NCBI GenBank assembly: GCA_965240325.2
Contig: OZ251238.1
Coordinates: forward strand, 992,001 to 1,056,000
Reading direction: 5' to 3'
Source of the DNA: Rebecca billardiae RCC1528
Lineage: Eukaryota; Protista; Haptophyta
DNA: 64,000 nucleotides
Part shown: positions 15,595 through 64,000 of the stretch, in pieces
How positions within the stretch are numbered: the first letter of the stretch is position 1
How the letters are laid out: each line of letters starts with the position of its first letter
Made by a program: the position numbers and the translations under genes
The notes under the pieces: generated by a model
What the model was told of the DNA's origin: nothing
Database searches by the model: none
What the model saw: only the letters and a program-made list of their open reading frames with translations

Positions 15595-15782
15595 CGTGCA
15601 GCCCAGGGCGAGGGCGGGCGCCGTGGCAGGCTGGCAAGCCGGCTCGCTCGGCTGCGCATCGATTGCGCGCCGCGCGGCGCCACGCGAGGCGGCGAGCGTC
15701 GCGCGTCGGCGGCGCGCGCGTCGGCAGTGAGCGCTCGCGCCTCGGCCACGCACAGGCCGCCGCGCGAGCTCCCGCTCGGCCC

Positions 15783-18679: not shown

Positions 18680-18714
<35 letters not shown>

Positions 18715-33300: not shown

Positions 33301-33583
33301 GGGCGTGCTCTGCATGTACTGTGTACTCCGGGAACGACTTGGCCCACCGCACTACCTGATGCGCAGGCATTTGGGTCTCCACCAAAAAGACAATATCAGG
33401 TGTCCCCACTGCTCGAATCCAAGTGGCGATGTCGTCCCGCCGGACAGAGGGGTCAGCCCCACCTGCTCCCCCAACATTGCAGTATGCATACGAGATGTCA
33501 GCATGGCTGTATTGGTAGCCCTGCTGCATTGGCGCTGCTGCTGCACCAGCAACACCTGGGCCTGCATCACCCTGTCCTATCAT
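27362..33583 (-). CDS. LINE ORF2: AP endonuclease, reverse transcriptase, RNase H, CCHC zinc knuckle (2073 aa)
   Basis: EN: YCNVGG, FLVET, FYNP, CDGN, IDYIF, GAHVP. RT: SAPGPDGI, NYRGIAL, DIQKAFDSV, GTKQGDPAS, IMDD. RNase H: ATDGS, AEFMAI, CTD, HVKAHS, NACSD. Zinc: CPLC...DTEHHLFSEC. Confidence 0.95.
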   Translation of the reverse strand: MIGQGDAGPGVAGAAAAPMQQGYQYSHADISYAYCNVGGAGGADPSVRRDDIATWIRAVGTPDIVFLVETQMPAHQVVRWAKSFPEYTVHAEHARDRRKGEKGARAGCAILVRKAHVGAPKSLHLNSVCRGREILYPELAGHIISGEITLCRGNGQAVPMWVCCFYNPHDEERQHLLLPHIVNHLRTGTCIGLPTAGNMRTHAVHVARHAARLQLVACDGNGHMHDSNAGEGATPKVVFRTYMTDADHLFNQIPSTTRWDTLERPTFITAHREDGNGADRSVIDYIFSNMDTVGHTGHMDISEKATLRMPGAHVPIYGRIHSVALRGAAAVLASPVQPPRHIRVDLGKTSPDWNKAKQLLAMWMEGLPLHIADFAEAPVPAHMLVQPSLVTTAATALTTLRHLTTLATRDMATVLEQPSVYDGQPDTPLKIRPATAGAAAGQHKSKADAASAALHAGDILANRAAAGLPAGPAVRRAVRRYERTWGTGAAQSQHWIQVAMGPHGQVPVGPFLSHQRWRQIVQQQCRTSRAQVKAVWQQQAEEQKRAWFAKVKVETKKNSHKLRVMVYAKDPITLPTIVRRSDGALATSVDDVKSEYRGHYQGLLERQYTRPGGRPPWHAGGHMWHDIRAAWHTDPGDAYVTALGTPPTPAQIRHIITSEVGGNSAPGPDGIQYNVLKLLEGHHAERDEPVLPSGTRTHRQHAAQQTGAQQGAARGQGTGHPGPIATIISNLCAVMYATGTLLDGLQQGEVVSLHKHGDMHVLGNYRGIALNSVVYKIMARHQNNVMQAASDRLRLIEPEQAASREGGQVVQQVAVFANVVADAHRSRRTLFCALMDIQKAFDSVPYQGIEDGFRSHGYPAMFYTLMRSLGEGHDVVVRTPYGPTDSVRLRCGTKQGDPASSTKFCLFINMFLRYLKSRHGGYHVQSKCSSDDADAAAGQVTVVATAIMDDINLYAHSRADITAMMQDLVDFLWYYDMEPNYPKSKVAVYVPPGHAQVDPIQVINRATGQAALIDTLQDGEYFTYAGVVTNIHLATDRMFASLKARVAKAAARVQAADCCTETKKLLTVWDVTSILFYFYEVVGMSRGRLNQLQSLMVEPVVRSAALPGRIAYEAACFPPQFLGLGLINLHAHLESVQAHAYYHFLADDPRGLCARTSMAAMGALQSVEHPARARVRGASTFASTIVTGRNSVRRMGWALLPSEVNLGSKLMQQLAPGLGMLATNRTHRAYTRLAAMPGAAALPCLAPHGLPDANGEMLSRIEHSLVDGTQHVLLGVLMQQPPRQMVSTAFYAELSSLPHRSRPAVILAVRDMLRAVLTDQSYYRYLGHVPAAKRTVCDPPNPRHLPALPVPGMLMVATDGSFDAENGQAACAFSFFNGNNYTAPVHVYCSKFAGHQAPGPAEFMAITDALVQIDPTANLLVCTDLQEMVKAAEMWQNDPWDRRLRQGHHAYAPYIARVMSLVGWRRLRHGSTTSFEHVKAHSADDAAARHLSLTHNPGDQHCTVSQHSVAALRQAGMNPKTLLNACSDAGAKLCCSDPATPCVTHKRGGHPNAGSHAMVQLADGEPVAGRIKPLVYDSVLSQRATHLQVTKSSCDLVGEWTGVWPEASTGVLRTWQANTVPAYYILHHGYEFLQPAALRDPTLLSVRFQSGAAFSDACPLCDHAPLLHPAPDTEHHLFSECPEVDAYRMAAARSVSHVIEPFMQGQAAAWNLARHVCSGAALMGRVPSTLKTTVGGNVHLGRTMHVALLKAGLGIMQARKDVDSQLSKAGRLLRHARELRPPPGHGPGGQPPPPQAQAGPGGAIAMNNQLQGPPVIQQQPPAQAGQGWQAGAGQANLHQPIARGHHVRPQSLSQAWPLQRARPLPMVIAWPLQPATPLVAWPLQYATPLARSNVGPPDNMLTHGGPEMEADPAAGSHTGNGAHSDLTQSDTGQQAAQPPAGSARPPAAPRRGLPPPSQAQQDSPPPKRHCPPRQANVPQRSTLPPAQRSRKRRANDTSPGVLAIATTLLASYSCPRPDLMPDVAHMSDMTPSASIAARVKYRRLAARASGPDPCPATGLDDSPLSSLPRAGIG

Positions 33584-37600: not shown

Positions 37601-40316
37601 GGCGGAGCGGGGGACGCTCAAGCTGGCGGAGTACCTGCTCGCCGGCCTCGCCGACGTCGGCGCGCAGGACCGCTGGGGCCGCACGCCACTCGACGAGGCG
37701 ATTGAGCGGCGCTTCACGCTCGTGGCTCAGCTGCTCAAGCGCAAGTCGGCGCCGTCGTCGCGCGCCGCGCTCGGCCATCGGCTGCGCGACGCGGCGGCGG
37801 CGGGCGACGCGCGCGAGATCCGCTTCCTGCTGGAGATGTGCGCGCCGATTGACGAAACCGACTACGACCTGCGCACGCCGCTGCACTACGCCGTCGGCGC
37901 CGGCTCTCTCTGCGCCGTGCAGCTGCTTGCTGCCAGCATGGCCGACGTGTCGCGCGCCGACCGCTGGGGCGCGAGCGCGCTCGTGCTCGCGCTGCGGACC
38001 GAGCGCCTCGCGCTCGCGGCGGTGCTCGCGCACACGGGCGGCGCCGAGCTCGTGCCCGGCCTCCCGGACGACGGGCTGCTCCGCGAGGCCCTCGAGCGCG
38101 CCCTCGAGCTGCGCGTCCGCTCGATCAACGCAATCATCCACGCGCGCGCGCAGGCGCGGCGGCGCGCGGCGGCGCGCACGCTCGCTGTCTCGCACGAGGT
38201 CGAGCTCGAGCTGACGAATCTCGCGCAGGAGATGCGCGGGCTCGAGCGCGCGCAGGGGCAGCTGTTCAGGCTGCTCGGCCGGCACGTGGACGCGTGGGTG
38301 AACGAGTGTGCGTGCCGCCCCGCCCGCCCGCCGCGCGCGCGCGCGCGCGCGCGCCGCGCGCGACGGCCGTGTGCTCGCGCTGTCTGCGCGCCGCGCGCGC
38401 CAATCGGCGCCCGCGCGCGCGCGCGCGCGCCCGGCGCGCGCTCGCGCAGACGCGGTGGAGGACGAGGACGAGGACGAGGACGACGCCCTGAGCGCGTCGA
38501 GCGGCTCGCTGGCCGAGCTCTCCGACGACGGCTCCGCGTCGGACGGCGGCGCCGGTACGCCGCGGTCTGTTGGTTTCGCGCGCGTCGACGGCGGCGGCGG
38601 CGGCACGGGCGGCGGCGGCGGCGGCGCGGGCGGCGGCGCGGGCGGCGGCGAGGGCGGCGGCGAGGGCGGCGGCGCGCGCGTCGGCAAGGAGGGCGGCGGC
38701 GCGGCCGCCGAGGCCGAGCCCATCGCCGCGCAGAACCAGTTCATCAAGCTGATGCTGCAGCTGCCACGCGCCGAGTCGGGCCTATGCGCGATGCGCGAGC
38801 TCTTCCGCAAGCAATTTGGGCCCGAGCGTTTCGGCGGGCTGCCCGGGCCGGTGCGGCGGCATCGCGAGGACTTGGCGCTGCGCCGGCTGCTGCGGGAGGA
38901 CCTGTACCTCTCCGAGCCCGCGGCGCACCAGATCGCGCTCGAGATCTATGCCGAGCTCGCCCGACTGCTGCTGATGCCCGCGCCCTCGCGCGCCGCGCAT
39001 GATGAGGCGTTGCGCGAGGCGGCGGCCGCGGCCGCCGCCTCCGCGGCGGGCGCGCCGGCCGACGCGGCGGGCGGCGGCGGCGGCGGCGGCGGCGGCGCGG
39101 AGCCACCGACCTCGGTGGCGGCGGCGGTGGCGGCGGCCGGCGCCGCGGCCGGCGCCGCGGGCGCGCGCGCGCGCTCGCCGCCCGGCGCGCACGCGCGCCA
39201 GCCGCGCCACGGGCAGTCTCACGCCAGGCGGCCCGCGCGCAAGCTGAGCGGCGGCGGCGGCGGCGGCGGCGGCGGCCGCTCGGCCAAGCCCAAGTTCGAC
39301 AAGGCGAGGGCGGTGCGCGAGATGCTGCGCCACTCGGCGCACACGGGCTCGACGCTCGTGCGGCTGGCGAAGCTGGCGCACGGCGCGCCGCTGGAGACAG
39401 TCGGAGCGGACGCGGGCAGCGGCGCGGGCGAGCACGTGGTCAGCCTCGGAGAGTTCCGGGAAAGTATCGCGCCGGCCGTGTTCGCTTCGGAGCTGGGGCA
39501 CGTGATTTTGTTCTGCTCGCCCACGCTGCTGCACTCGCTGCGCGACCGGCACGCGCGCGCGGGGCGGCCGTGGCTCGCGGGCGCGGCGGGCGCGGGCTCG
39601 CTCGATGACAGAGAGCGTGTGTGGCGCGGCTTCGGCCTCTCGCCCGGACCGCTCCGATTCCGGACGCAGCGCGGCTCCGCGAGCGTTGGCGCTTCGCCGG
39701 AGGGCGGGCGGCGCGGCGCGGCGGGGCTGGGCTCGCCGGCCGCGCCGCGGCAGGGGCTAGCACGCCCGTCGTCGCTGCTCTCGGCCGGCGGCGCGGCGCA
39801 GGTGTCCAACGGGTACCGGCGCAGGCGTCGAACTGATGATCCCTCGCTGCCCTTCGGCGCGCGCGTGCCGCCGGCGGTGACAGCCGCGCCGGTCTCGCCG
39901 GAGCAGGAGGGCTCGGGCGAGGCTGACGCGTCGGCGGAGCGCGCGCCCGCGCAGGGCCGGCGGGCACGGCGCTGGACGGGCGACCCGTCGGCGCCGCCGC
40001 CCGCGTGGGCGCGCGAGCTCGCCGCACGCTCGCGTGCCCATCTGCTCGATCCTCCGACGCTGCCGCCTGCGGCCGGCGCCGACGCGGACGCGGAGCCAGC
40101 AGCCGAGCCGGGCGCGACAGCGCGCTCGGCCGGCGGCACGACCGATGACTCGGCCGGCGCGACGCCGCGCGCGTCCGGCCGGCGCTCGCGGCGCTGGACG
40201 GGCGACCCGGCGTCGCTGCCGCCCGCGTGGGCGCGCGAGCTCGTCGCGGCGCGCTCGCGCGCGCTCGACCCGCCCTCGCCGCCGCCGCTGCCCGTCGGTG
40301 GCTCCAGCCCCAACAT

Positions 40317-40354
<38 letters not shown>

Positions 40355-43300
40355 ATGAGGCGAGTGGACGGCTGTGCGCGCCGCCGCCGCCGATGCCGAC
40401 CGGCGCGTCGTCCCCCGAGCTCGTGCGAGCGGCCGAGCCGGGCGGCAGCGGCGGGGGCGGCAGCGGCGCCGGGCAGCGGCGGCAGCGCTCCTCCTTCTTC
40501 GGCGCGGGCGCGAGCCCCGGCGGCCGCGACGTGGCGCGGCGCCCGTCAAGGCTGCTGCACAGGGCGGCGGACCGCGCCGCCGCCGCCGCCGCCGCCACGC
40601 CCGCGCACGACTCCTCCGCGTGTGCGGCGGCGGAGGCGGCAGACGTGGACGAGACTCAACACTCTGCCGAGAGCCTCCACCGGCGCCGTGAGCTGCGCGC
40701 CGCCATCGCCGAGTCGATCCACGTGATCGCCGCGCTCTTCGCGTACTGCGACAAGCGCGGCAGCGCGGCCGTGCGCATGCGCGACGTGCGCGCTCTGCAG
40801 TCGACCGTCGGCGACGCGAGCTCGGGCGAGATCAAGGCGCTGATCGCGACGCTGGTGGACACGTCGCGATCGCTCGGCCGGCCGCTGCTCGCGCCCGCGA
40901 CGGCCGGCGCCGCCGCCGCCGCCGCCGCCGCGGAGGTGCGCCTCGACCCGATGGCGCTCGCACGGCCGCTGCCGCCGGCGGGCGGCGCGCAGCAGGCCGC
41001 CGCCGGGCGAGTCGGCGGCGGCGCGGCGCCGGGCGCGCGCGCGGAAAGCGGCGGCGGCGGCGCGGTGCAGCCCGCGCAAGGAAAGTCTCGGGACGCGCCG
41101 GCGGTCGCGGTGGCCAGCGCGGCTGCGCCCGGCGGCGGGCCAGCCGGCACCGCGCCCACCACAGGCCTCGACGCCCCGGGCGCCACCTCCGACGCCCCCA
41201 CCGCCGCCGCGCTCGAGGGCCCTCTATTCCCCGCGACACTGAGCAAGATGCGGAGCAATGGCGGCGGCGGCGCGGCGGGTGGTGGGGCGGGGAGCGCGCC
41301 ACACCGGGGTGGCGGCACGGCGGACGTCGGCGCGAGCGTCGAGCGTACGCCCGCCCCGCCGCCCGGCGCCGCCACCCCGGCCGCCGCCGCGTCGTCCGCC
41401 TCGGCGCAGCCCGGCTCGGCGCAGTCCTGCTCGGCACAGCCCGGCTCGGCACAGCCCGGCTCGGCGCAGCCCGGCTCGCCAGGCGGCGGCGAATCGCGGG
41501 TCGGCCGTCGGCGGCGCAGCAGCGCGGGCGGCATTGAAGGGATCGAAGGGCTGCGGACGAAGCAGCGCGCGCCCAAGGAGATGAGCGAGGCCGCCTTCTT
41601 CCTCGGCGTCGCCACCTGGATCCTGACCGAGGCCTCGGAGACCGAGCCGGAACCGGAGGCGGCGGCGGGCGGCGCGGCGGACGCGGCGGACGGCGGTGAG
41701 GCGCCGTCGACGGCGGTGCCGACGGCCGCCAGGGGCGGCGGCAGCGGAGGCGGCGTGTCCGAGCGGCGCGCCGACGGGGGCGGCGGGAGTGCCAGCACGG
41801 CGGGCGCCGCGCGGCCAGCCGCCCCGCCCGCCCCGCCCCGGCTTTCGCTCGACGCAGTGCACCGGGCGGCCGGCGCCGCCGCCGCGCCGCCGCCAGAGCC
41901 AAGGGCGGCGGGCGGCGGCGGCGGCGGCGCAGCGGGCGCGCACGACGCGTCGCACCCCACGCACAGCTTCGACGGCGGCGCGTCCGCGGCCGAGCGCGGC
42001 GCGCCCCCGGACGACGCCGCGTCCGCCGACGCCGCGCTCCTCGCCAACCTGACCACCGCGGGCGCTTACACCGCGCTGGCGGACGCGCTTGAGCAAAGGT
42101 TGGACGCTCGCCGAATGGTGTCCGAGGACGCGGTGCGGTTGGCGACGCTTGTGGCGCTCGTGCACGCGATCGTGACGCTGCCGCCCGGCGTGACGAGCGC
42201 GCACATCGAGCGCTGGTGCGCCGCGGAGCTCGGGCTCACGCTCGCGCGCGACGGCGAGGCGGCGGCTGCGAGCGGCCGGCCGCAGCCGCAGCCGCAGCCG
42301 CCGTCGCCGCAGCGGGCGGCGGGCGGCGGCGCGGTGGCGGGCGGCGGCGCACCGGGCTCCGGCGCGGGCGGTGTCGCGGGCGAGGACGGCGGCGCGGAGG
42401 CGGCGCCGCGCGCCACGTGGGGCGCGCTGCTCCGCCAGCTGCGCGCCGCCGCCCTCGCGCTCCGCGAGGAGGGCGCGCGGCCGCGGCGCGCCGCGCGCCT
42501 CTCCGCGGCCGCGGCGACTCGCAGCGCGTATCGCACGCGCGCGACGTTGCTCTCGGCGCTCGGGGTGCGCGTGCCCGAGCGCAAGCTGCTGCCCGGCGAG
42601 GACGGCGGCGCGGGGATGCCCTGGTACCTCATCTCCGCCTCCTCCCGCGCCGCACGCGCGCTCCGCCGCATCTTCCTCCTCATCTCGCTGTGGGATTTTT
42701 TAATGCTCCCGCTCGAATTATCGTTCTGGCACGCTGCGCGGCACGTGCCGGCGTTCGGCTGGGTGCAGCTGGGGATCGACGCGTGGCTGATCCTGCACAT
42801 CGCGCTGCGCTTCCACACGACGTACGTCAACGACAACTCCGTCGAGGTCACCGCGCCCAAGCTGCTGCGCTGGTGCGCGCCGCGCGCGCGCGCGCGCGCG
42901 CGCGCATGCGCCAATGCGCAGCGCTCGCGCCCGGCGCATTGGCGCGCGCGCGCGCGCGCTCGACAGCAGCCCGCGGCCCTCCCCACGCCCCGCCCCGCCC
43001 CGCGCGCACAGGCACTACATGCAGGGCGACTTTGCGCTCGACATCTTCGCCGCGTGGCCGCACAACCTCCTCGCCCTCGCGCTCGGCGCGCGGCCTATCG
43101 TCGTCGTGCTGCTGCGGCTCACTCGGCTAGTGAACACGCGCTACCTCAGCGCCGCGTTCGGCGCGTGGCGGCGCTCGCTCGCGGACGACGACCTGTCGAG
43201 CGGGATCCTGGCGTACGTGGCCGGTCTGCTCGTCTTCACGCACGTGTGCGCGTGCGTCTTCAACGTGCTCGGCAACTCGGAGATTGCAATCTCGGCGCTC

Positions 43301-46300
43301 GGCGTGACGTGGACGCAAGTGTTTGACGGCTTCGAGGCGTCAGTCGGCGGCTCGCACGGCGCGCTCTCGCCGCTGGACGAGCTGGTGTCGCACTACCTCG
43401 TGTCGTACTTCTACTGCCTCGCGATCATCTCCGCCCTCGGCATCGCGCAGGTGCCCGCCAACTTTGTGGAGACCGTCGCGTACATCGTAATGGCCTCGTG
43501 CAACATGACTGTGTTCGCGTGGGCGGTCGGCGGCGTGTCGGGGCTAGTGATGCGGCTGGACGAGGAGACGGTGAAGAAGCGGGCGCAGCTCGAGCTGGTG
43601 AACTCGTACATCCGGCACATCGACGTGCCGCCCGAGCTCAAGGCGCGCCTCCGCCTCTTCTTCACGCAGCGGCTTCAGACGGCGTCGCTCTCGTCCGTGA
43701 GCGCCGAGCAGGTGTACGCGCAGCTGCCGATGGCGCTGGCGATGGAGGTGGCGACGCACACGAACCGCACGCTGGTGGGCGGCGCGGCGCTGCTGCGCGG
43801 CTGCTCCGCCGCCTTCCTCGACCGCCTCTCCGCCGCGCTCAAGGAGCGCGAGCTCGACGCCGAGGCGGTCGTCTTCCGCGCGGGCGAGGCGTGTGCGGAG
43901 CTCCTGCTGATCGCGTCCGGTGCGATCGAGGTGCTCCCGGACTCGGAGGAGCCCGAGGAGGCGCCGCTCGACGAGGGCGTCCTCGGCGAGCTGCTCATCG
44001 CCGGCGACACCGTCGGCGACGTGGCCTTCGCCTTTGGTGCGCGCGACGTCAACGCGCCGCGCGCAGCCGCGCCCGGCCGCCCTCGCCGAGCGCGCTGCGC
44101 CGGGGGCTCACGGCCCGCGCGCGCGCGCGCGCGCGCCCTGCGCGCGCGCGCACGCATGCAGGCATCCGACACATCAGCTCGGCGCGCGTGATGCGCGGCG
44201 CGAACGCGTCGGTCTTCTCGCTGCGGATGGGCGCGTACCGCGAGCTGCTCAAGGCCTTCCCCTCGCAGGAGGACTTCGTCATGGAGAATGCGATGCGCGC
44301 ATACGAGGGTGCGCGCGCGTGGCCGTTACGTGACCGTTACGTGGCCGTTACGTGGCCGTTACGCGCACGCGCGCTCGCGGCGCACTGAGGGCGCGCGCGG
44401 CGCACGACGTCACCCGCGCTCGCGCGCGCGCCCCGTCGCCCGCAGGCTCGCTCACCTCCCGCTCCAAGATGTCCTCGCGCTCGCTCGGCAGCTCGGCGCC
44501 AGGCTCGCCCGCAGGCTCCGTCCGTTCTGACGGCGCTCTGAGCGCGCCTAGTGCTGGCGGAGGCGCGGCGATGTCGGCTATTGCGTCGGACGGCGGCGGC
44601 GCCGGCGCCGCCGGCGGCGCGGGGCAGCAGCACGACGAGCTGCGCAACGTGCAGAAGATCCTCGCGGTGGCGAAGCGGAAGCGCACGCAGCTGCACCACG
44701 CGCGCCTCTGCTCCGCCTGCGCCAAGGGCGACGCCGACAAGGTGGGTAGGCTACTTTTTGCATCGGCGGAGGCGGTGGTGGACTTGGCTGACGGAATGGG
44801 TCGGCGCGCGCTGCACCTTGCGGCGTGCGGCGGCTCGGCGCAGGTGGTGCGGCTGCTGCTCGGCGCGAGGGCGGAGCCGAGCGCGGAGGACGAGCGCGGC
44901 GTGACGCCGCTCACCGAGGCGCTCACGCACGCCCACGCGCAGGTCGCTCAAATCCTCGAGGCGGCGGGCGCACGACACGGCTCCAACCGGACCGCCGCCG
45001 GCGGCGAAGGCGGCCTCGCCGAGCGCGCGTGCCTCGCGGGCGCGAGCGCGGACGGCGCGGCGGAGCTGCGCCGGATGGTGGCGTACGGCGCGGACGTGGG
45101 CGTGCGCGGCGCGGACGGGCGCACCGCGCTGCACCTCGCCGCGGCCGAGGGCCACCTCGCCAACGCCGCCCTGCTGCTTGACGCGCGCGCCGACGCGTGC
45201 GCAGTCGACGCGCGCGGCCGAACGGCGCTCGCGGAGGCCGTGGCTGCGAGGCACGACGACGTGGCCGCGCTGCTGCTCGAGCACGGCGGCTCGCTGGGCT
45301 CGCTCGACGCGCCGCGCGCGCTGTGCGAGGCCGCGGCCGCCGACGACGTCGCGCAGCTCGCGCGCCTCCTCCGCTTCCGCTGCGAGATCAACTCGGCGGA
45401 CGAGCATGGGCGCACAGCCCTGCACCTCGCGGCCTCCTGCGCCCATGTCACCGCCGCCAACTTTTTGCTGCAGGCGGCGCCGGGCGTCGTCGCGGTGAAC
45501 GCGGAGGACTGGCAGGGGTGCACGCCGCTGGACGACGCGGTGCGGGTGGAGGCGGGGGCCGAGCCCGTGCTCAGCACGCTGCTCGGCGCGCACGGCGCGC
45601 GCCGCGGCTCTCGACGCCCGAGCCCGCGGGGCGGCGGCGGCGGCGCGGGCGCGGGCGCGGCGGCGGCGGCGGCGACGACGACGGCGGTGGCTTCGGCTTC
45701 GGCCGCCGCGGCGGCGACGGAGGACGAGCCGGACCTGGAGGAGCGGATCATCGCGCAGGAGGCCGCGGTGATCGGCGCGCGCGAGGCGCTCCTCGCGCGC
45801 GTGCTCGCCGTGCGCGAGTGGACGCGCGCCGAGCGCGACGCGACTGGCCGGCTGCGCGCGCTCGTCGACCGCGCGCTAGCGCTCGAGCGCGAGCGCGGCG
45901 CTGTGCTGGCGGACGAGCTGCCGGAGCTGTGGGAGGGGATCTTCGAGTTCGCCGAGGCGCACTACCTGTGGCACGGCGCGGCGCTCAAGACGGTGCAGCC
46001 CGCGCTCGAGGAGTGGCAGGCCGAGGCGGCGGCGTACGCGCACGCCGCCGCGCGCGTCGTCAGTGAGAAGGTTCGAGCGCGCGCCGTGCGCCGCGCGCCG
46101 TTGTGCCGCGCGCAGCGCGTGCGCGATGATTCGCGAGCGGGGGGCGGAGCCGGCCGCGCGCACACGCCGCCCGCGCCGCGAGCTCACGCGCCCGCGGCGC
46201 CTCTGCCCCAACACCTCCCATCGCCCTCCATGGCCGGCACAGCTCGCCGAGCTCCTGCGCTGCCACGACACGGGCGCGCGGCCGGTCGAGCGCCTGTACG

Positions 46301-46473
46301 AGGTCACCTTCAGAAAGCCGGCGAGCAGCGCCCACCGCGGCTCGAGCGGCCGGCTCGCTGAGCTGATCGAGGCGGGCGGTGATATCGACGGGCGTGCGAG
46401 GCGGGGCGGCGGGGCGGCGGGGCGCTCGGGGAAGCGGGCAGCGCGCCCGGCCATCGCGCGGTACACCATGTAA
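34612..46473 (+). CDS. Giant (~3,499 aa) tandem Shaker/SKOR-like channel, 2 x [6TM-cNBD-ankyrin]; exons 34612-35463, 35649-35945, 36078-36242, 36573-38307, 38450-42872, 43012-44036, 44162-44308, 44446-46070, 46243-46473
   Basis: Module 1: pore SAMGYG, C-linker LPDELRARI..HF, cNBD VGEIAFVVGVPQPYTV, ankyrins (YDGRSVLHLA, DRWGRTPL). Module 2: LWDFLMLP...RFHTTY...HYMQGDFALD, pore SALGIAQ, cNBD, ankyrins. Eight GT-AG introns give 10,500 nt in frame. Confidence 0.8.
44318..44363. repeat. 11-bp tandem repeat (CGTGGCCGTTA) x4 within an intron
   Basis: Direct reading; one copy has a G>A change. Confidence 0.85.
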
Positions 46474-49334: not shown

Positions 49335-51261
49335 TCAGCCTCGCGCGCTCGCCGTGGGCGCGCGCTCGCCGCGCGGCGGCGGCGGCGCGGCGCGCTCGCA
49401 CCTGCCAGTGATTGGATGCGGCGGGGCGCCAAGGGACAGACCTCCTCCGCTCCGTCCGTCTGACTGCTCCGCGTCTGACCAAGGGTGTCCTTGGTCCGAC
49501 AGCCCGGCGTCTGCCGTTGGCCGTAGGGCCGGCGAGGTCGACGCATCCTGCGACGGTGGCGGCGGCGGTGTGAGGAGAATGGTGGCGGGGGCGAAGCCGC
49601 CACCGACGGGCGTGCCGGCGGACTCGGCGCCGCCACCGCCGCCGGGCGTGAGCGCTGCAGGAGTCACGCCACCGACTGCTGCATCCATGCCGCCGTTCGC
49701 GCCCGCGCGTGCGCCGCGTGCCTCGCCGCCGCTGCGGCCGCGCGCCGCGGACGGTGTCGCAGCCGTCGCCGGCGGGCCGCCGAACCCGCGGTGGTGGTGG
49801 TGCCGGTGCCCCGCGCCGGGCGTCGGCGTCGTGCCCGAGTTGGCGCGCGAGATGCGCTCAGCGGCCTTGTATGAAATCACCGCCGCCGCCACGACCATTG
49901 GCCCAATCAGAACTCCCGACGCTCCGAACGAGATCAGTCCGAGGAAGATTGAGATTGAAGTGACGTACGGGTGCACGAGCTGCAGGGAGGAGCTGGCGGG
50001 TGCGGCCGGGCGGCACGGCGCAGGCGGCGTGGCGCAGCGGTGGGCGCGGGCTGCCCGCGCCGAGCCGCGCGCGCGTGCCACACGCCGCGGGCGCGCGCGC
50101 GCGCGTGCATGCTCCCGCGCGCGCCACGCGTGCGCCGCGCGCGCGCGCGCGCGCGCACCCGAGGATGCGCTCGACGCACGACTCGGTCGTGTACACGCAG
50201 AGCCCGTAGAAGAACGCGCCCTGCAGCAGCCGCCCGCGCACCAGCACGAGGTGCGCCGCCCACGGCAGCGCGAGGCTCTTCGTGGAAGTTACCGGGAACA
50301 CGCCGACCAGCGCGGCCGTCACGGTCGCCACGTGTAGAAAAGGCAACGCGAACGCCCAGTGCAGCGCGTACACCACCGCGCCGTGCGCGAGGCCGGAGGA
50401 GACCGGGATCACGATCACGTCGTGCACGACGCACTGCGAAGCGCGCGCCGCCGGCGCCGGCGCGCGAGGAGGGGAACGCCGCGCCGCGCACGTTGGCGGC
50501 GCGCGCCGCCGGCGCCGGCGCGCACGGAGGCGTGTCTTGCCTCGCCTCGCACGGCCGCGCGCGAGGGGCACGGCTCACAGGGCACCCGCTGCGCGAGGTG
50601 CGTGCACGCGCGCTTCCACGAGGTGCGCGCGCGCGGGAGAGCCGGCGCGCCGCGCGGGGGCGCCGCGCAGCACCTGCAAGTCCCGCAGCAGCTCGCGCCG
50701 CGCCGCCTCGGCCGCTGGGAGCACGGAAACAGCCAGAGCGAGCCACGAGCGCTCGAGCCGGAGTAAATAAAAAAGGGCCGTGAGGAAAAAGACCGCCTTG
50801 AAGAAGGCGTCGGAGGCGGAGGACATGAGCGTGAGCGCCGTGGACAGCAGCGTGCCGCCCACCTGCGGCCGGCGGCGCGCGGTTGCGGCGGCGGCGCGGG
50901 TTGGCGGCGGGGGCGGCGCGCGGTGGCGGTGGCGGTGATGCGCCAGGCGGTTGGGCGCGCGGGCGGCAGCAGGCGCAGCGTGCGCGCGGCCGGCCGTGCG
51001 TAGACCAGGGCACAGGGCGGCCGGCACAACAGCCACGCGCGCGCGCGCGCGCGCGACGCCACGCGGCGCGCACCGCTGACGCGCCGCCGGCGATGGCGAA
51101 CGCCACAGCTCTAAGCTGGTCCGCCCGCTGCGCGGCGAGGCTGGCCAGCTCCGCGCGCAGCTCCGCAAATGACGCACCGCCCGCGCCGCTCGCAGAGAAC
51201 GCCTCACTGACGCTCGCCGAGAGCACCGCCGCCTTGTGCGCCAGCCGGTGCAGGAGGCCTT

Positions 51262-51299
<38 letters not shown>

Positions 51300-51792
51300 T
51301 GCACCGGCGACGACAGCGTGAGCGCCGGCTGCTGCGTCGCCTCGCCGTCGATGCCGGTCAGCCCGGCCGAATCGGACGGCACAGCCTCCACGGCTGCTTG
51401 GGTGTGAATGGTGCTGGGCGGCGGTGGCACCGCCGCGGACGCGCCGGCTGGGCGCGACCACCGCCCCCGCCGCGCACTCCCGCACTCCTGGGCGCCGCCA
51501 CGCCCCGCATCAGGCCTGCCGAGCAGCCGACGCCACCAGCGCACGCGGCAGCCGCGCTCCGCGCCTCCGTTCGCGCCGCCTGCAGCGGCAGGTGCCGCTG
51601 CGCCGCTCGCGCCGCCGCGCCGCTCGGCGCCGCTCGGCGCGGCACCACCGCCGGACGACCCAGGCTCGGCGCCACCGGGCGCTGCCGGCGGGGACGTGCC
51701 CGCTGCCCCGGCGGCATGCGCGCGCGCCGTTGCCCCGCCCTCGTTCGCAGGCAGCGACGACCCCGAGCGTGCGCCCGCGCCGCCCGGAGCCG

Positions 51793-51829
<37 letters not shown>

Positions 51830-52843
51830 GCTCTGCGGCAGCTGCTGCAACGAGTACTGCCACTCGGCGGGCACGACCGCGGCGATCATCGCGTCGAGCG
51901 CCGGCGCCCAGACCGACGCATTCGCCACGCCGAGGTACGCGAGCAGCGGCTCCGACTGGACGATGGCTCCACCGCCGGCCGAGGCCGCGCCCGGCGCCGC
52001 TGCCGCAGCTGCTGAACCAGCTCGGCCGTGCACGCCGCCGCCAGGCTCGGCCGCGGTGCGGTTGAGCGCGTCGAGCACGTGCGGCACGTGGTGCGCGCCG
52101 AACACGCCGCTCGCGTCCACCGCGGCGATCAGCGACGCCGCCGCCGCGACGAGCGGCGACGGCGGCGGCGTGCCATCCGGCAACACAAGCGCCGCATCCG
52201 CGTCCGCGCCGGCGGCGGCGGCGAGCGCGCCGCCGCCGCCGTTCGCGCGCTGCGCGGCGGCGGCGGCCTCGCCGACGAGGGTGAGCACCGACTCGCGCCA
52301 CTCGGCGAGCAGCCAGTCCACCGCCTGCGACGCCTCGCTCACGCACTGCACCGCGAAGAACACCGTGGCGAACGCCGCGACTAGCACGAGACCGGTGAGC
52401 AACGTCAGAGTCACGAGCGAATGCGCAGAGACGACGCGCCGCGCGCCGACGCAGCAGAGCACGAAGACGGCGGCGGAGACGAGGAGCGAGATCGCCACGA
52501 GCGCACCCAGCCACGGCGCCGCGAGCAGCACGCCCAGCGCGCCCGCGCTCGCGCCCAGCCACACGCGCGCCGAGCGCTCGCCCGCCCGCGGCAGCGCCAG
52601 GGAGATCGCGCGCACCGGGCCGACGGTGACGGTGGCGTGGACGGCGCGCAGCAGCAGCTCCTTGCTCGGGCGCAGCGCCTCGCTGATCAGCAGCGCGTAC
52701 AGCAGCGGGCCGAAGTACGGCGCGAACAGGTACACGTTCAGGTACATGAGCGCGAGCAGCAGCAGTGCGAGAACGTTGCCGAGCGCGTGCGCGATCGCGA
52801 GGTCGGCGAGCGAGAGCGGGCGCGAGGCGGCGGAGGAGACCAT
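49335..52843 (-). CDS. TMEM245 / AI-2E-like multi-pass membrane protein; exons 52843-51074, 50862-50674, 50433-50159, ~49991-49335
   Basis: N-terminal YLFAPYFGPLLYALLISEALRP, VFFLTALFYLL and C-terminal HPYVTSISIFLGLISFGASGVLIGP resemble TMEM245. The 3' end is uncertain. Confidence 0.75.
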
Positions 52844-53794
52844 GCCGCCGGCTACGCGCGCGGCGCCGCGGGCCGACGCGCGCCGGACACCGGTGTGCGA
52901 CGACAACGACGCTCGCGGAGTGGGGCAGCGCCGACGACCGAGGACGACGCGCGGCCGGAGGTGCAAGCAGTACAGTAGCGAGTAGCGTGATGGCTGCGGC
53001 GGCGGCGGCGGCGGCCCTTTCACCGGACGACGCGCGGCCGGAAAATGACACCGAAGGAATGCGTGCACCATAACCGCGCGCGCGTCGCGCTCCTTCTGGC
53101 GATCCGGTGTTTACGATAGGCGGATGCAGGGGTTGCCTGGGGCCGCCAGTCGCCACGGGGGGGGGCAGGGCGGCGAGGCAGCGCCCGCCCGGCAGCACAT
53201 CGCCCCCCCCGTGGACGCTGACTCAAGCCGCACCCACCCCAGCGCGGCGATCCCACGCCAGGGAGGGCGGGCGGGAGGCGGAGGAGCGCCGCTGGCTGTC
53301 CGTGAGTGTGCCGGCGCCGCCGCGGCCTGCCGCCCGGGGGCCCCGGGCCCGGGCGGGGCCGCTGTGCTCAGGCGTCGGCCGGGGCAGGGTGCGCCGGGGG
53401 GCAGTCGCGGCGGAAGCGGTCGGCTGCACGACGTGGGCTGCCCTGACCGGCCCCGAAGGTGCGCCTGTCGCGCCGAGGGTCGGCCCTCCTGCAGGTACGC
53501 TCACTTTCCGCTTGGTACCCGCGCCGCAAAGGCGAGCTGCTTCCGACTCACATCTCGTCACCGTGCGGTCACTCCGGCGATGCCGCTGCGAGCGCCGAGC
53601 CCGCGTCCGGCCAGGTATACGCCCACCTAGCGGGGAGGGGCACGGGCGGCGGCGGAGCAGCGACGCGGCAGTCATAACGCGATAACCGCCGCGGACTGCC
53701 AAACCCACCACTCCCGTCGCGTCGGCCATCGCCCCGAAACCCCGCCCCGTTTGCTCACTGTGCCGATTGAGCATGCGCGCATCACTGCTCAGCC

Positions 53795-55426
53795 TCAGAC
53801 GAGGAGGGCGAGCCCCTCGCCATACCGCTGCGCTTTGTCGCGCAGCAGCACGGCAGCTGCCCCCAGCCGTCCCAGCCAGCACATGCTAAACACGCACGCG
53901 GCGCCCGACAGCAGCCCCGCCGGCTGCGCGGCGCGCCAGGCCGACGGCGCGCCGAGTGCCGTGGCGGCGAGCGAAAACTCGACCGCAGCCGTCCACGCGA
54001 CGATGCGCGCCTCGCCCAGCGTGGTGGTGCCGTCGCCTAACTCCAGCATCGGCGCGGCCGCGTAGAGGAGGAGGCAGCTCGCCACGGCCACGGCCCACGC
54101 CTCGCACCCCTCCTCGCGCTGAAGCGCAAAGCGCGCGAGCGCGACGAGCACGGCGAACGCGCCGGGCAGAAGGAGCGCCAGCCAGTTGCCGAACGCGCAG
54201 CCGAACAGCGCGATCGGCAGCGCGCGGCTCACCACGCCGAACAGACCGAGCGCGCGCGCCGCCCGTCGCGTGCCGCCGCCGCCATCCCAGTCCAGGCCCT
54301 CGAGCCCGTCGCCATGGCCGCCCGCGGGGCGCATGTGCGCGTCGCCGAGCACGAGGCTCATGCCCGCAACCGAGACGGCGAGCGAGACCCACGACAGCGC
54401 CGACGCGCGCCCCGCGCCCAGCCACAGCAGCACGTACCCCTGCACGAACACCTGCGGCGCCGCCTCGAGCGCCACCTCGAACAGCCTCAGGCGGACCAGG
54501 CTCTGCGCGTCCACCGGGCGCGCGCGCTCCCCCTCCCACACGCGCACCACCGCCGCGTGCACCGTGCCGAGCTGCAGCACGCTCGACACGGCCGCCCCGC
54601 CGCGCGCGAGCAGGCTCGAGCCCTCACCTGGGATGAAGCCCCGCGCCGCACCGAAGATGAGCGCCGCCAGCGTGTTCAGCCCGACGCAGCTGAGCGCGAT
54701 CGCCGCCCAGACGGTGTGGCCGCACCGGAGCCACTCGGTCGCGAGTAGCAGGTCCGTCACGCCGTCGGCGCTCGCGAGCAGCGCGCCGCCCAACTGGACG
54801 GCCGCCTTCTTCCGGGCGTCCCGCCAGCCCGCGCGGTACACCAGTCCAGCTATCAACGCCGAGCCCGCCACGGCCACAAGCACCACCGCCGCAAATCCGA
54901 GCTTCTCCGACGACGTGCCGGGTGAGCGCATGAAGGCCTGGGTGTCCCGGCCCACGCGCTGGAGGCACAGCGCGGCCTCGAGGCGCTCGTCCGACGGCGC
55001 AGGCCCGAGCGTTGCATCCTCGGCCGGCGCCGCGCCAGCCTCTGCACCGCCGCCCGCTGCCAGCGTCTCGTCCGCCTCAGCCGCCGCCTCAGCAGCGCCC
55101 TCGTCGCCCTCCGTGCCGTTCAGTGCCGCGCCGGGCGCATGCGCAACGCGTACGCCGGCATCATCGGCTGCGATAGCACCGCTCTCTGTGCGCGCCGACA
55201 CGTCTGACGCCAGCGCGCATCCGCCGCCCTCGCACCCAGCGCCGTCGGCGCCGCTCGTCGTCGGTGGCTCGTCCCCGAGAGCGAGAAGCGCACGCGCGCG
55301 CACGTGCTCGGACGCCGAGCGCAGGGGCGGCGTGCTCTGGCCATGCAGCAGGGCAATTCCACACGTAGTGGGCAGCGCGCACACAACAAGCGCGAGTTTC
55401 GCCGCGCCAGGCCTCGACGGGCGCAT
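53795..55426 (-). CDS. XK-related multi-pass membrane protein, copy 2
   Basis: Paralogue of 11497-13035, sharing DGVTDLLLATEWLRCGH and LFEVALEAAPQVF.QGY. Confidence 0.7.
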   Translation of the reverse strand: MRPSRPGAAKLALVVCALPTTCGIALLHGQSTPPLRSASEHVRARALLALGDEPPTTSGADGAGCEGGGCALASDVSARTESGAIAADDAGVRVAHAPGAALNGTEGDEGAAEAAAEADETLAAGGGAEAGAAPAEDATLGPAPSDERLEAALCLQRVGRDTQAFMRSPGTSSEKLGFAAVVLVAVAGSALIAGLVYRAGWRDARKKAAVQLGGALLASADGVTDLLLATEWLRCGHTVWAAIALSCVGLNTLAALIFGAARGFIPGEGSSLLARGGAAVSSVLQLGTVHAAVVRVWEGERARPVDAQSLVRLRLFEVALEAAPQVFVQGYVLLWLGAGRASALSWVSLAVSVAGMSLVLGDAHMRPAGGHGDGLEGLDWDGGGGTRRAARALGLFGVVSRALPIALFGCAFGNWLALLLPGAFAVLVALARFALQREEGCEAWAVAVASCLLLYAAAPMLELGDGTTTLGEARIVAWTAAVEFSLAATALGAPSAWRAAQPAGLLSGAACVFSMCWLGRLGAAAVLLRDKAQRYGEGLALLV

Positions 55427-56108
55427 CTTTGGGGATGTCGGCTTGTGATTGTGCGCCACGCCGGCACCGATGCCTCTGCTTACCGTACAGCGGCCTGCAC
55501 GACTGCGTAGGCCGGCGAGGCCGCGTGATGCCTGCGCTAGCGATGGTCTCGTCCAGCACACGCCCAGCCCGCGCCGTGGAGTTGCGTTGCGAGCCCGCCC
55601 ACCTCCCGAGGGAAGAGGCGCCTCGCCGCCGGGCCGGCCGCCGGCGAATTCGAGAATGGCGGCGATGAACTACGGCGCTTTCGCGGCAACGCGTGTCGTT
55701 AAATCATAGAATGGGTCTGCCGTTTGTCCGGCCGTTTTTTTTTGCTTTGCAAGTGCATGGCATCGCCCGGCGGCCGGCCCGGGACGCAATGCCATCCGGA
55801 CATCCCGCGGGCTAGCTACAGCAGTTTACTAAGAATAAGAGACGCACACAGCTCAGGCAGGCGAGATTACAGTATCGCTGCGTGTCATCCGGCACTCCCG
55901 AGCAGCTCTACTCATCATCAGGAATAAGTGGCATAGCCATCATCATTAGCAGAGATCAGTGCCGCAGCGAGTGCACTTTGTGCGGGCGACGCGACGATGA
56001 CCATCAGTCCATCAGGGCGGGCCCCGGTGCCCGGACCCGGCGTGTCACCGTGTGCACGCGGCCTGGCGCATTAAGGCCGCATCAAGCAGGGAGGCGACGC
56101 GCGTTCAA

Positions 56109-56342
56109 TTATACGGCTGATCTCGTTTGGCCGTCGGCGGCGGCGGGCGTGTTCGTCAGCGCGGCTCTCACCAGCGGCAGGTACTCCCGGACCGTCCGGT
56201 TGAACGCGGAGATGGTGGCGAGCTCGACGGTCCGCTTGAGCGCCTCGCGCACGGCGGGGTCCTCCTCGACCGTGGCGTACATCACGTGGAACGTATCGAT
56301 CGCGGAGACGAGCGCGTGGCCGCGGTCCTCGGCGCCGCCCTC

Positions 56343-56377
<35 letters not shown>

Positions 56378-59300
56378 GCGCGCTCACGCTCACCACCTCC
56401 ACGTCCTCGAGCCGGTTGCCCATCGCGCGCCAGATGTACATCTCGGCGACGCAGCGGCTGCGGTCGGCGACGGAGGGTCCGGCGAGCAGCAGCAGCCGGC
56501 GCGAGCGCGCCATGTACACGGGCACGTGCGAGAGCCGCTCGATGGGAAGGAGCGAAGGGTCTGCGCACAGCACGTCGAGCCACGCGCGCGGCGGCCGGCC
56601 CTCGCGCGCCTCGAAGCCGGCCGCCCACGCGCGGAGCGCGGCGATCCGGCCCGCCGCCGAGTCCTCGCGCGCGTGCACGACATACGCGTCCGCGACCGGG
56701 AGCTCGGCCGCGGCGCCGCCGGCCTCCGCGCCGCGCGCGCCGCCCACGCGCGCCGTGCTCTCGACGAGCGAGAGAGCGCTGCTGGGCGCAGCCACGCCGG
56801 CCCCCGGCGAGCGCGGCCCGCCCGCGGCCGCGCGCGGCGCGCGCGCAGACGCATCCGCACTCGCCGGGCCCGAGTCGCGCCGGCCCAGCACGCCGGGGGA
56901 GGCTCGCGAGGTGGACGCGCGCGGCGCCACGGCCGAGCTGCGCATCGAGCTGAGGGAATCTCGCGAAGAGACCGCGCTGGAGCCGCGCTCGAGCCGCGCG
57001 CCCGCCGCGGGGGAGGGGCGCACGGAGGCGGAGCCGAAGGATTCGCGCGACGACACGGCGCTGGAGCCGCGCTCGAGCCGCGAGCCCGCACCCGGCGACA
57101 TGCGCAGAGATGCGAAGCCGATGGAATCGCGCGACGACAGCACGCCCGAGCCTTGCTCCAGTCGCGAGCCCGCAAACGGCGACAGGCGCGCCGAGGAGGA
57201 CCCTCGGGAGAAGCGCGAGCTCGGGCTCGGAGACTTGCGCAGCGAGGCCACGGAGTCCCACGGCGTGACGGTCGCGCTCGAGCGGAGCGATGCGGCCGCG
57301 AGCCAGCGCGACGCCGCCGAGGGCGAGCTCCCTCCAGAGCCGATCAGCGAGCCACTGCCGCCGCCGGGCACGGGGGTCAGGCGCGGCTGGCGCGCCGGGC
57401 GTGTCGCGCGCCGCGCGCGCACGAGCGCGGTCAGGCTGTCGCGCGAGCTCATGCGCGCCTCGGTGAGCGCGTCGAGCGTTTGCGCGTCGAGGCTCGCCGT
57501 CTCGAACGATCGCAGGGCCTCGCGCGCGAGCTGCGCCGCGTCCACCTCGCGCTCACGATCGCCGTACCCAAGCAGCGGCGCGATGGAGGCGGCGGGCCCC
57601 GCGGATGCGACCGCCTGCGCGATGGCCGCGCGCGCGCGCCGCCGGAACGCGGCCGAGAGCATGCACGTGCCGATGGCGACGGAGGTGGCCGAGCTCGCGC
57701 CGACGATCGGGTACAGCCACGCCGAGCGCACGGCCGCCAGCCCCGAGACGAGCGCCCACGCGACGTTGTACGCATCCATCAGCCCGTGGAGCGCCGTCCA
57801 CAGCCCGGTGGTCGTCCAGAGGGCGTCGAGCAGCCTCGCGCTGCTGCGCCAGCGCGCGGGCACGAGCACGAGCAGCATCACGGCCCACAGCCCCACGTAC
57901 TCGACGATGCGCCCCGCGGCGTTCGCCACGCCCGCGCCGTGGTACAGGCGGGCGGGCCGCGCCCCGCCGTCTGCGAGCGAGTACGGGTCCTGGTAGGAGT
58001 CCGGGTCTTTTTCGAGCAGGACTGCGAGGTGCGGGATGTACACGAGGCAGCCGTAGAAAATGGCGAGGGTGCCCACGCTGCCGCCGAAGAAGAGCATGCG
58101 CGCGCGCATGCCGTCGGAGCAGGGCAGCGCGAGCAGGCTCACCAGAACGCCCGCCTGCACAAGCAGCGTGTACACGTGCGAGCGCGCGGCGAACTCGTCG
58201 TCCAGCTCATATAGCACAGATGCGTTGGGCGCGCCGCTGTGCCGCCGACCGGTGTGCTCGCTGTCGAGCAGGTAGCCGCCGCTCGAGGCCGCGACGAGGA
58301 GCACGCCCGCGACGGAGTACGCGCGCGAGAGCCCCAGCAGGTGGCGCCGCGCGCTGCCCACGCTCGCCTCGAGCTGAGATTCGATCTCTGCCGCGCTCAG
58401 CGCGCGCGCGCCGTCGCCCGAAGGCTCGCTCGGCCGCACGAGCAGCTGAGATGCCACGCGCGTGCGGTCGTGCGAGGCGGGCAGGGCCGCGCCGCGCGCG
58501 CGACGCCGCGAGGGCGTCGACCAGTCGCCCATCGCGTCGTCGTCGCCGCCGCCCGCGCCCACGCGAGCGCCCGCGCCCGCGCCCGAAGCCGCGAGCGCGA
58601 CTGTCCCCCGCGTCAGCACGACGACATCGTGATACGCATCTCGCAGCGCGTTGAGCACGTGGCCGAGCTCGAGCGTGTGCTCCGCGCCGATGTAGAGCAG
58701 GTGCGCGTCCGCGCCGCCGCTCACCGCGCCGCGCGAGCCGGCCGCGCCGCCGGAGCCGCCCCCGGACCCCAGCGGCACGCGCACCGGACGCGCCTCCGCC
58801 TCCATCGTGCCCGAAATGTCCGGGAGAACAGACATGAGCGCGAGCACGTCGTACGGCTTGACGAAGCCGTCGAGGAGGTCGCGGATGGGCGCGGTCGCGT
58901 CCAGGCTCGCGTACCCCCGCCGCTCGAACTCCGCGCCGCCCACGCCGCAGAACGTCTCGAAGTACCACTGCTTCGTGCAGCGCGCGGGCAGCTCGCCCGC
59001 GCACAGACGGCGCCACAGGCCCTCCAGCCCAAGGTGCTGCGCGTCCGCGAGGTAGCGCATGACGGGGCAGTCCGTGCGCGCCGCGAAGCTCTTCGCGAGC
59101 TGCATGGGCAGCATCGGCACCGCGTGCCGGCTCACCACGCGCAGGCGCACGCCGCGCGAGAAGCAGAAGTCGTACACGGCCTGCGCCGCCTCTGGATCGA
59201 AGCCGTTGTTGACGGACGAGTCGGCGCGCCAGCCGTGCGCCGCCGACGGGTCGCGCTCGAGGCCCCCCTGCACGGCCACGGTGTGCACGCGGCCCGCGAC

Positions 59301-59729
59301 GAGGTCGGGCCTCGCCCGGATGGCCTCGGCCAGGTCGCGCAGCGACGAGATGCACACGATCCTGAGCGAGTGCGGCGCGGCCGCGACCAGCGTGCGCTCC
59401 AGCAGCTGTGCGCCGCGCAAAATCGCCGAGTCCGGGACGGAGGCGTAGCCCGAGAGGAGGTACTCGTGGGGCATCGGCGCGTACGGCTGAGCGCCCTCCT
59501 CCCCCGCGCCCACGGGCACGTCGGACGCCGCCACGTGGTCCAGGAGGCACCGCGCGAGGCGCGCGCGCGCCTGCGCCTGCTGCCCGCCGTTGGCAATCAC
59601 CGCCCGCAGCGACACGCGACCGCGCTTGTGCTGCGTCGCCGCGACGAGCAAAGCCTTCGCGTCGTCAGGGTCGGGACCCAAATCCGTGATGAGGACGAGC
59701 GGGAACGCGCGCGACCTGCGCGTCCACAT
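56109..59729 (-). CDS. Fusion protein: XopQ/HopQ1-like nucleoside-hydrolase domain, multi-TM region, Ser/Arg linker, TIR-like domain (alternative ATG 59894)
   Basis: NH-like: LITDLGPDPDD, QGG...SVNNGFD, YLADAQHLGLEGLW, WYFETF, YDVLAL. About 6 hydrophobic helices. TIR-like: DAYVVHAREDS...WLDVLC...VPVYMARSRRLLLLAGPSVADRSRCVAE. Confidence 0.8.
56950..57190 (-). repeat. 84-bp (28-aa) degenerate coding repeat, about 3 copies
   Basis: AGSRLEQGSGVLSSRDS / AGSRLERGSSAVSSRES / AGARLERGSSAVSSRDS. Confidence 0.8.

Positions 59730-63908: not shown

Positions 63909-64000
<92 letters not shown>
63909..64000. repeat. (AT)n microsatellite running off the window end
   Basis: Direct reading of the sequence. 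Confidence 0.98.

Follow-up and report, generated by a model that had tools for sequence, protein, structure and literature searches.

Why should an alga carry, in one polypeptide, a hydrolase of the kind known from bacterial type III effectors, a membrane region and a domain resembling the TIR domains of immune receptors? The question is raised by a stretch of 64,000 nucleotides of eukaryotic nuclear DNA from the haptophyte Rebecca billardiae RCC1528 (assembly GCA_965240325.2, contig OZ251238.1, positions 992,001 to 1,056,000 of the forward strand). We call this stretch the window, and all coordinates refer to it. The gene lies on the minus strand at 56109–59729 and consists of a single exon of 1206 codons and a stop. 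From the N-terminus, its product contains a XopQ/HopQ1-like domain, a six-helix membrane bundle and a TIR/HET-like domain, all three parts being encoded on the minus strand. Both soluble domains are of known kinds, and the combination recurs in related algae. In our preferred reading, to which we give a probability of roughly 45%, the protein sits in the membrane and makes a nucleotide by means of its TIR-type domain, and the XopQ-type hydrolase tethered to it degrades or processes what is made.

The N-terminal domain comprises residues 9–370 (58620–59705), and Pfam, PDB and NCBIfam matches identify it as having the nucleoside-hydrolase fold. The Pfam family IU_nuc_hydro matched residues 15–213; the score was 42.7 bits when the whole protein was scanned and 46.1 bits with the domain alone, in both cases above the gathering cut-off of 34.2. 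The top three PDB matches were all XopQ (7jlu_B, 4kl0_A and 4p5f_A; E of approximately 1e-23, residues 11–305), whereas the best canonical nucleoside hydrolase reached only E 2e-5. In NCBIfam, the XopQ model NF041355 scored 96.9 bits and UriH 26.3 bits, and XopQ/HopQ1/RipB is the best-scoring named family for the domain in the two databases. The score is far under the equivalog cut-off of 500 bits for NF041355, and the domain is therefore related to XopQ without being its orthologue. The alignment begins at XopQ chain residue 124, which corresponds to residue 11 here; in the algal protein the aligned core has no more than 10 residues ahead of it, and the protein lacks the N-terminal secretion/targeting region of the effector. 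An earlier note, made from the letters of the window alone, had picked out the motifs TDLGPDPDD (59687–59661), NNGFD (59210–59196), AQHLGLEGLW (59042–59013), WYFETF (58967–58950) and YDVLAL (58853–58836), and had argued that they follow HopQ1/XopQ and not the classic hydrolases. All of them are present in the translation at these positions, as is the CVAE motif described below, and the scores bear out the assignment. On this sequence evidence, we place the domain in the XopQ/HopQ1-like (HLP) branch of the nucleoside-hydrolase superfamily.

The residues expected of a working enzyme of this branch are retained. The putative Ca2+ site is the non-canonical D16-x3-D20-x-D22-D23 (59661–59684) within TDLGPDPDD. 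This is the DXXXDXDD type described for HopQ1 (PMC6019455) and not the classical DXDXXXDD. Its residues are retained in 13 or 14 of 14 relatives. XopQ chain residues 133 and 412, the only pair of aspartates spaced 279 apart, as D120 and D399 are, align to D20 and D294, and the latter (codon at 58848–58850) is thus the counterpart of the second catalytic aspartate. Among the relatives with a near-complete domain, all 14 that have a residue at the D20 column retain the aspartate. The alignment at the D294 column contains 15 sequences, those of 14 relatives and of the protein of the window, and 13 of them have an aspartate there. The algal domain and the effectors XopQ/HopQ1/RipB of plant-pathogenic bacteria (4kl0, 4p5f, 7jlu) are therefore alike in hydrolase fold, in the DXXXDXDD motif and in both catalytic aspartates. 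They differ in that the algal protein is eukaryotic, anchored in the membrane, fused to a TIR-like domain and not an effector.

What is known of XopQ gives these residues a possible meaning. A preprint of June 2026 reports that XopQ cleaves the TIR product 2′cADPR, a signal of plants, to ADP-ribose (ADPR) specifically and with near diffusion-limited efficiency, that the D120N and D399N substitutions each abolish this cleavage, and that XopQ was crystallized with ADPR in its pocket. Hydrolysis of the 2′cADPR type has been reported only for bacterial XopQ homologues. The literature also contains the earlier report that XopQ hydrolyzes 2′,3′-cAMP/cGMP in vitro, which the earlier note had given as background. 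HopQ1-like proteins of haptophytes and heterokonts were described by Piechocki et al. in 2018 as a distinct algal clade (PMC6019455), and the N-terminal domain fits this description. That paper analyzed the hydrolase domain only, with no mention of transmembrane regions, TIR domains or domain architecture.

The C-terminal domain comprises residues 1010–1195 (56145–56702) and includes a helical C-terminal extension and a poly-Gly loop. The earlier note had proposed a TIR-like domain at 56690–56390; the TIR-like character stood, and the extent did not, the domain being larger. No match to the domain of the window itself was found in NCBIfam or in Pfam, the families TIR, TIR_2 and HET included. 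An exhaustive HMMER search located the domain at E ≤1e-3 in 1043 representatives of clusters at 50% identity, where it usually sits at the C-terminal end of long proteins. A profile of 30 members had the TIR domain of TLR15/TLR2 as its best PDB match (E 0.04, two collinear motifs), and a second profile made from more distant members returned the same match (E 0.027). When 22 distant members were scanned singly, TIR_2 was matched by eight (best 2e-4, 22.3 bits against a cut-off of 28), HET by seven (best 17.8 bits against 22.5, profile positions 29–64 approximately) and Pfam TIR by two (best 15.9 bits against 21.3). All of these matches are below threshold. The TIR_2 alignments are collinear and run over nearly the whole profile, and the likeness to the fungal HET domain (PF06985) consists of the matches over its central conserved block. 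A review describes the HET domain as related to TIR, with its activity unproven. The domain of the window has no HET match, and it stands C-terminal to a membrane bundle and not in the fungal NLR/HET architecture.

The AlphaFold model of the C-terminal domain has a mean predicted local distance difference test score (pLDDT) of 87.8 and a predicted template modeling score (pTM) of 0.84. The only low-confidence stretch inside it is a run of ten glycines (residues 1121–1130), where the DNA reads (CGC)15 at 56333–56377. All 50 of the best PDB matches found with Foldseek were TIR domains, with E of 1e-3 to 0.1 and template modeling (TM) scores of 0.31–0.51; they include SPARTA TIR-APAZ, RUN1, RPV1, RPP1, SNC1, L6/L7, MyD88, MAL, TRIF, SARM1, ThsB and AbTir. 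The expectation that the domain would model as TIR-like was thus borne out. Enzymatic TIR domains (plant RUN1, RPP1 and RPS4, SARM1, ThsB and SPARTA TIR-APAZ) provide the closest comparison, being the best fold matches. In the algal domain the segment that separates the second strand from the third is longer than in these, and the helical extension takes the place of the last strand; the model shows four clear strands and not five. Its TM scores are also low, and its sequence matches stay under the Pfam thresholds. Because the fold matches, although consistent, are weak and the four strands are followed by a helical extension, we file the domain as a member of the TIR/HET superfamily that belongs to no curated family.

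The candidate catalytic residue is Glu1096 (codon at 56442–56444), the last residue of the CVAE motif (56453–56442), which the translation confirms to be kept as the earlier note had it. In the model it lies at the start of the helix that follows the third strand. Through alignments A1 and A4 it corresponds to the glutamate of the equivalent motif in the TIR domains of TLR15/2 and RPS4, a position that is the catalytic one in the TIR domains of plants and SARM1. A glutamate occupies this column in 111 of 147 family members (76%), in at least 90% of alignment A4, and in 20 of the 24 hydrolase-fused sequences, the window included.

In a library of viral proteins, Tetraselmis virus 1 supplied the best fold match of the C-terminal domain, a TIR/WD40 protein; next came deoxyribosyltransferase-like proteins, which belong to the same fold class. 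A “Toll-like receptor” of Chrysochromulina ericina virus is also among the best viral matches. Giant viruses of algae encode TIR-fold proteins, which hints at TIR-type signaling in conflicts between algae and viruses.

Between the two soluble domains lies the membrane region. A Gly/Ala-rich linker of low complexity (residues 371–445; 58395–58619), which does not align to XopQ, leads into a bundle of six helices (residues 446–708; 57606–58394). The hydrophobic cores of the helices are residues 467–488, 517–538, 546–572, 604–626, 636–662 and 672–696, and the six hydrophobic or helical segments together span 58331–57642. The AlphaFold model of residues 431–790, built with 14 relatives as alignment rows, consists of six long helices, with a pLDDT of 82.9 for the model as a whole and values above 90 within the bundle. 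Hydropathy and model hence agree with the earlier count of about six transmembrane helices. Foldseek found no meaningful match to the bundle in the PDB; the best had E 0.15 and TM scores of at most 0.37, in a mixture of G-protein-coupled receptors, BAR domains and designed bundles. Pfam and NCBIfam have no match for it, and a word-indexed search with the membrane piece also returned none. The PADLOC models of 2023, which cover anti-phage defense proteins and among them Thoeris components, matched none of the three parts of the protein, the bundle among them, at E ≤10; the membrane protein ThsG, discussed below, post-dates that library.

The loops of the bundle carry a charge of +6 on the even-numbered (cytosolic) side and −4 on the odd-numbered side, and no signal peptide is found in the protein of the window or in its relatives. 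For these two reasons we favor, as an inference, a topology with both termini inside and both soluble domains in the cytosol. The bundle is followed by a conserved juxtamembrane helical segment (residues 709–790; 57360–57605). In alignment A2, the columns that are invariant or nearly so lie between R696, in the last transmembrane helix, and P782, and the same segment precedes the C-terminal domain in distant relatives. The remaining region, residues 791–1009 (56703–57359), is a Ser-rich and probably disordered linker. It contains three repeats of 28 residues, encoded by an 84-bp tandem repeat in 3.0 copies at 56947–57198, so that the repeat-bearing linker reported before is indeed there. Serine accounts for 57 of the 211 residues counted over positions 790–1000 (27%). 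The GC content at third codon positions (GC3) is 0.82–0.93 in this linker, which shows that it is coding. In the nearest relative, P0001, the linker is much shorter. We also looked for an enrichment of RxxS phospho-motifs in the linker and rejected it, as four were observed and 7.0 expected.

The fusion is a trait of a family and not of this locus. The order hydrolase, four to seven hydrophobic segments, TIR-like domain was found in at least 20 further cluster representatives. The named ones come from Pavlovales only (Diacronema lutheri and Pavlovales sp. CCMP2436), and the best relatives are approximately 52% identical to the protein of the window; an exact look-up of the latter returned no record. 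P0001 is 52% identical over residues 11–773 and 995–1191 and fills a transcript-like contig of 3288 nt; P0023 is the open reading frame (ORF) of an MMETSP transcript. Relatives thus express the three parts as one message, and from these transcript-derived sequences with the same order of parts we conclude that the fusion is real. The earlier note had named two separate genes as what would undo its proposal and had suggested a search for the same architecture in other algae; the transcripts speak for one gene, and the architecture was found. One further protein, P0003 (Diacronema lutheri KFE25_004819), has a XopQ-like domain and a membrane region with no TIR-like domain in the annotated model. 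Either there are truncated members of the subfamily or the gene model is incomplete.

The wider family indicates which parts belong to its core. We analyzed 154 proteins, made up of the best 150 representatives of the C-terminal domain and four earlier matches. The XopQ-like domain was matched by 25 of them, and 22 of these are among the 87 members of at least 400 residues. Most of the long members that lack the hydrolase still have three to six hydrophobic segments upstream of the C-terminal domain, and no other recurrent known partner domain was found among the 64 long hydrolase-free members. Judged from these members, bundle and TIR-like domain together make up the putative core unit of the family, to which one subfamily would have added the XopQ-like hydrolase as an accessory; this hydrolase is the sole recurrent known partner. 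A profile search with alignment A1 added eight proteins, none of which has a Pfam annotation, and the database entries for the proteins of this family are hypothetical proteins only. A large unannotated family, with a six-helix bundle and a TIR/HET-like domain, is thereby exposed; its C-terminal domain occurs in more than 1000 clusters at 50% identity.

How might such a protein work? According to the preferred reading, the gene product would be a polytopic membrane protein with both soluble domains facing the cytosol. The TIR/HET-like domain, with Glu1096 kept, is predicted to consume NAD+ and to release an ADP-ribose-derived signal upon oligomerization in the membrane. The XopQ-family domain is predicted to hydrolyze a ribosyl linkage in this product, as XopQ does with 2′cADPR. 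With the maker of a signal tethered to its breaker, the pulse would limit itself or be subject to a threshold; the alternative outcome would be a processing step. The six-helix bundle would be the anchor and probably senses or transmits the trigger, with the Ser-rich linker as a flexible tether. The order of the parts, the families to which both ends belong, the retention of the key residues and the recurrence of the fusion are established, as is the published activity of XopQ; activities for the two algal domains, a common substrate and any role in immunity or cell death are what we infer from them. The idea of a writer and an eraser on one chain had been put forward in the earlier note, and it is strengthened by the 2026 preprint, in which XopQ cleaves the TIR product 2′cADPR. 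Since the fusion of a XopQ-type and a TIR-type domain recurs in a eukaryote, it provides independent “Rosetta stone” evidence that the two activities belong to one shared pathway. Taken together, this suggests a self-limiting nucleotide-signaling unit in eukaryotes, not previously described.

Several observations weigh against the preferred reading. The C-terminal domain of the window has no Pfam match, and its relatives stay under the TIR_2 and HET cut-offs. Its TM scores are low (0.31–0.51), with E of 1e-3 or weaker and one clear strand too few. The tryptophan that usually precedes Cys-x-x-Glu is an arginine in the protein of the window, and the glutamate itself is missing in about a quarter of the family (approximately 24%). 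On the hydrolase side, XopQ is highly specific for its substrate and the identity of the algal domain to XopQ is modest, and the algal substrate could for this reason differ from 2′cADPR. The predicted sharing of a pathway by the two domains is drawn from the fusion itself and from no other source.

These points leave room for two other functional readings, both of which we consider unlikely. In the first, the TIR-like domain makes a nucleotide that the XopQ-like domain does not destroy but senses, and binding gates the bundle as a pore or channel, leading to ion flux or cell death. The protein would then be the eukaryotic counterpart of type VI Thoeris, in which a TIR protein acts with the membrane protein ThsG and the signal is 2′cADPR. 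The likeness extends to a TIR-type generator coupled to a membrane effector and to the signal, which is the very molecule that XopQ cleaves. The crystal of XopQ with ADPR held in its pocket fits a sensor, and so does the bundle, which models confidently as a compact unit of long helices and forms, with the TIR-like domain, the conserved core of a large family. However, the fused family has conserved its two catalytic aspartates and the Ca2+ motif, and turnover accounts for this better than binding does. Foldseek matched the bundle to no channel, no PADLOC model was matched, and the majority of family members do without the putative sensor. Type VI Thoeris is also bacterial, is made of two proteins and has no hydrolase.

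In the second, likewise improbable, the two ends of the protein have unrelated functions. The C-terminal domain would be a non-enzymatic TIR/HET interaction or death-fold module, and the hydrolase would be of the ribonucleoside type, with a part in membrane-linked salvage or with another substrate that has no connection to TIR products. In its favor, the literature describes many TIR domains of animals as adaptors, fungal HET domains have yet to be proven active, the C-terminal domain falls below the Pfam thresholds, and approximately 24% of the family lack the glutamate. Against it, the glutamate is present in 20 of the 24 sequences that carry the hydrolase, the window included, and the hydrolase is of the XopQ type and not of the salvage type. 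No other known domain recurs in the family, whereas the hydrolase does (25 of 154 proteins; 22 of the 87 long ones).

The earlier note had also considered that the XopQ-like domain might be an integrated decoy. This is unlikely and finds no support here: the catalytic residues of the hydrolase are conserved across the family, and the domain resembles the effector enzyme itself and not a target of it in the host.

The weakest alternative, that two or three neighboring genes are read through by chance in GC-rich DNA or that an intron is retained in the Ser-rich stretch, is very improbable and largely refuted: long frames do occur on all strands at the 70–80% GC of this locus and the Ser-rich linker does not align to the nearest relative, but GC3 is 0.82–1.00 in every 40-codon window from residue 11 to residue 1206, the Gly/Ala-rich and Ser-rich linkers included, the strong codon-position bias continues through all linkers in this frame alone, and the same order of parts is seen in the 20 other representatives, some of them derived from transcripts. 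Immediately outside the coding region, GC3 drops to 0.5–0.7 on both sides. From the continuous high GC3 and its fall outside, it follows that the gene is one uninterrupted exon with no sign of an intron, as the intronless reading of the earlier note had held.

The ORF list and translation place the ATG at 59729 and the stop at 56109–56111, giving a product of 1206 residues. The open frame extends upstream to 59906. GC3 in these 59 additional codons is 0.64, as against 0.9–1.0 within the gene, and the relatives start 5–25 residues ahead of the first hydrolase motif; 59729 is for both reasons the likely start codon. An upstream in-frame ATG at 59894 would lengthen the N-terminus by a hydrophobic stretch resembling a signal, and we rejected it on the same two grounds.

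A full-text literature search aimed at a XopQ-like/TIR-like fusion found no published description of one, in line with the statement of the earlier note that no such architecture was known. The combination of the two domains, and the family formed by the bundle and the TIR-like domain, appear to be undescribed. The fusion points to what the HopQ1-like proteins of eukaryotes, without a known function since 2018, may do natively, and it is relevant to the question of enzymatic activity in HET/TIR-like domains from organisms other than plants, animals and bacteria. A broader picture can be drawn, which is tentative and rather less than an even bet. In haptophytes and perhaps in other protists, TIR-derived ADP-ribose nucleotides would act as membrane-associated signals, made and controlled by a single-chain module of generator, membrane sensor/effector and XopQ-type off-switch. 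On this view, TIR signals would be under the endogenous control of the XopQ-like hydrolases of eukaryotes, from which the bacterial XopQ effectors would descend or which they would imitate.

The surroundings of the gene are those of a GC-rich locus with many other long ORFs, a by-product of the 70–80% GC, and no second copy of any of the three protein parts was found within the window. Directly downstream and on the same strand (53795–55561) is an ORF for a polytopic membrane protein related to XK (PF09815, 29.9 bits); GC3 drops between the two, and it is therefore a separate gene. A LINE-type non-LTR retroelement ORF of 2073 residues occupies 27362–33583 on the minus strand, with endonuclease/exonuclease/phosphatase and reverse-transcriptase domains and a GC content of 0.58–0.66. 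Four other long ORFs (15297–20654, 38308–43326 and 44352–46361 on the plus strand and 49934–53071 on the minus strand) were scanned against Pfam. Two of them, of 1672 and 1045 residues, had no Pfam match; of the others, one contains RSE1/DDB1/CPSF1 β-propellers and one contains ankyrin repeats. Upstream of the fusion gene, the GC content falls to 0.56, and the window ends in this region with a perfect (AT)n microsatellite at 63909–64000.

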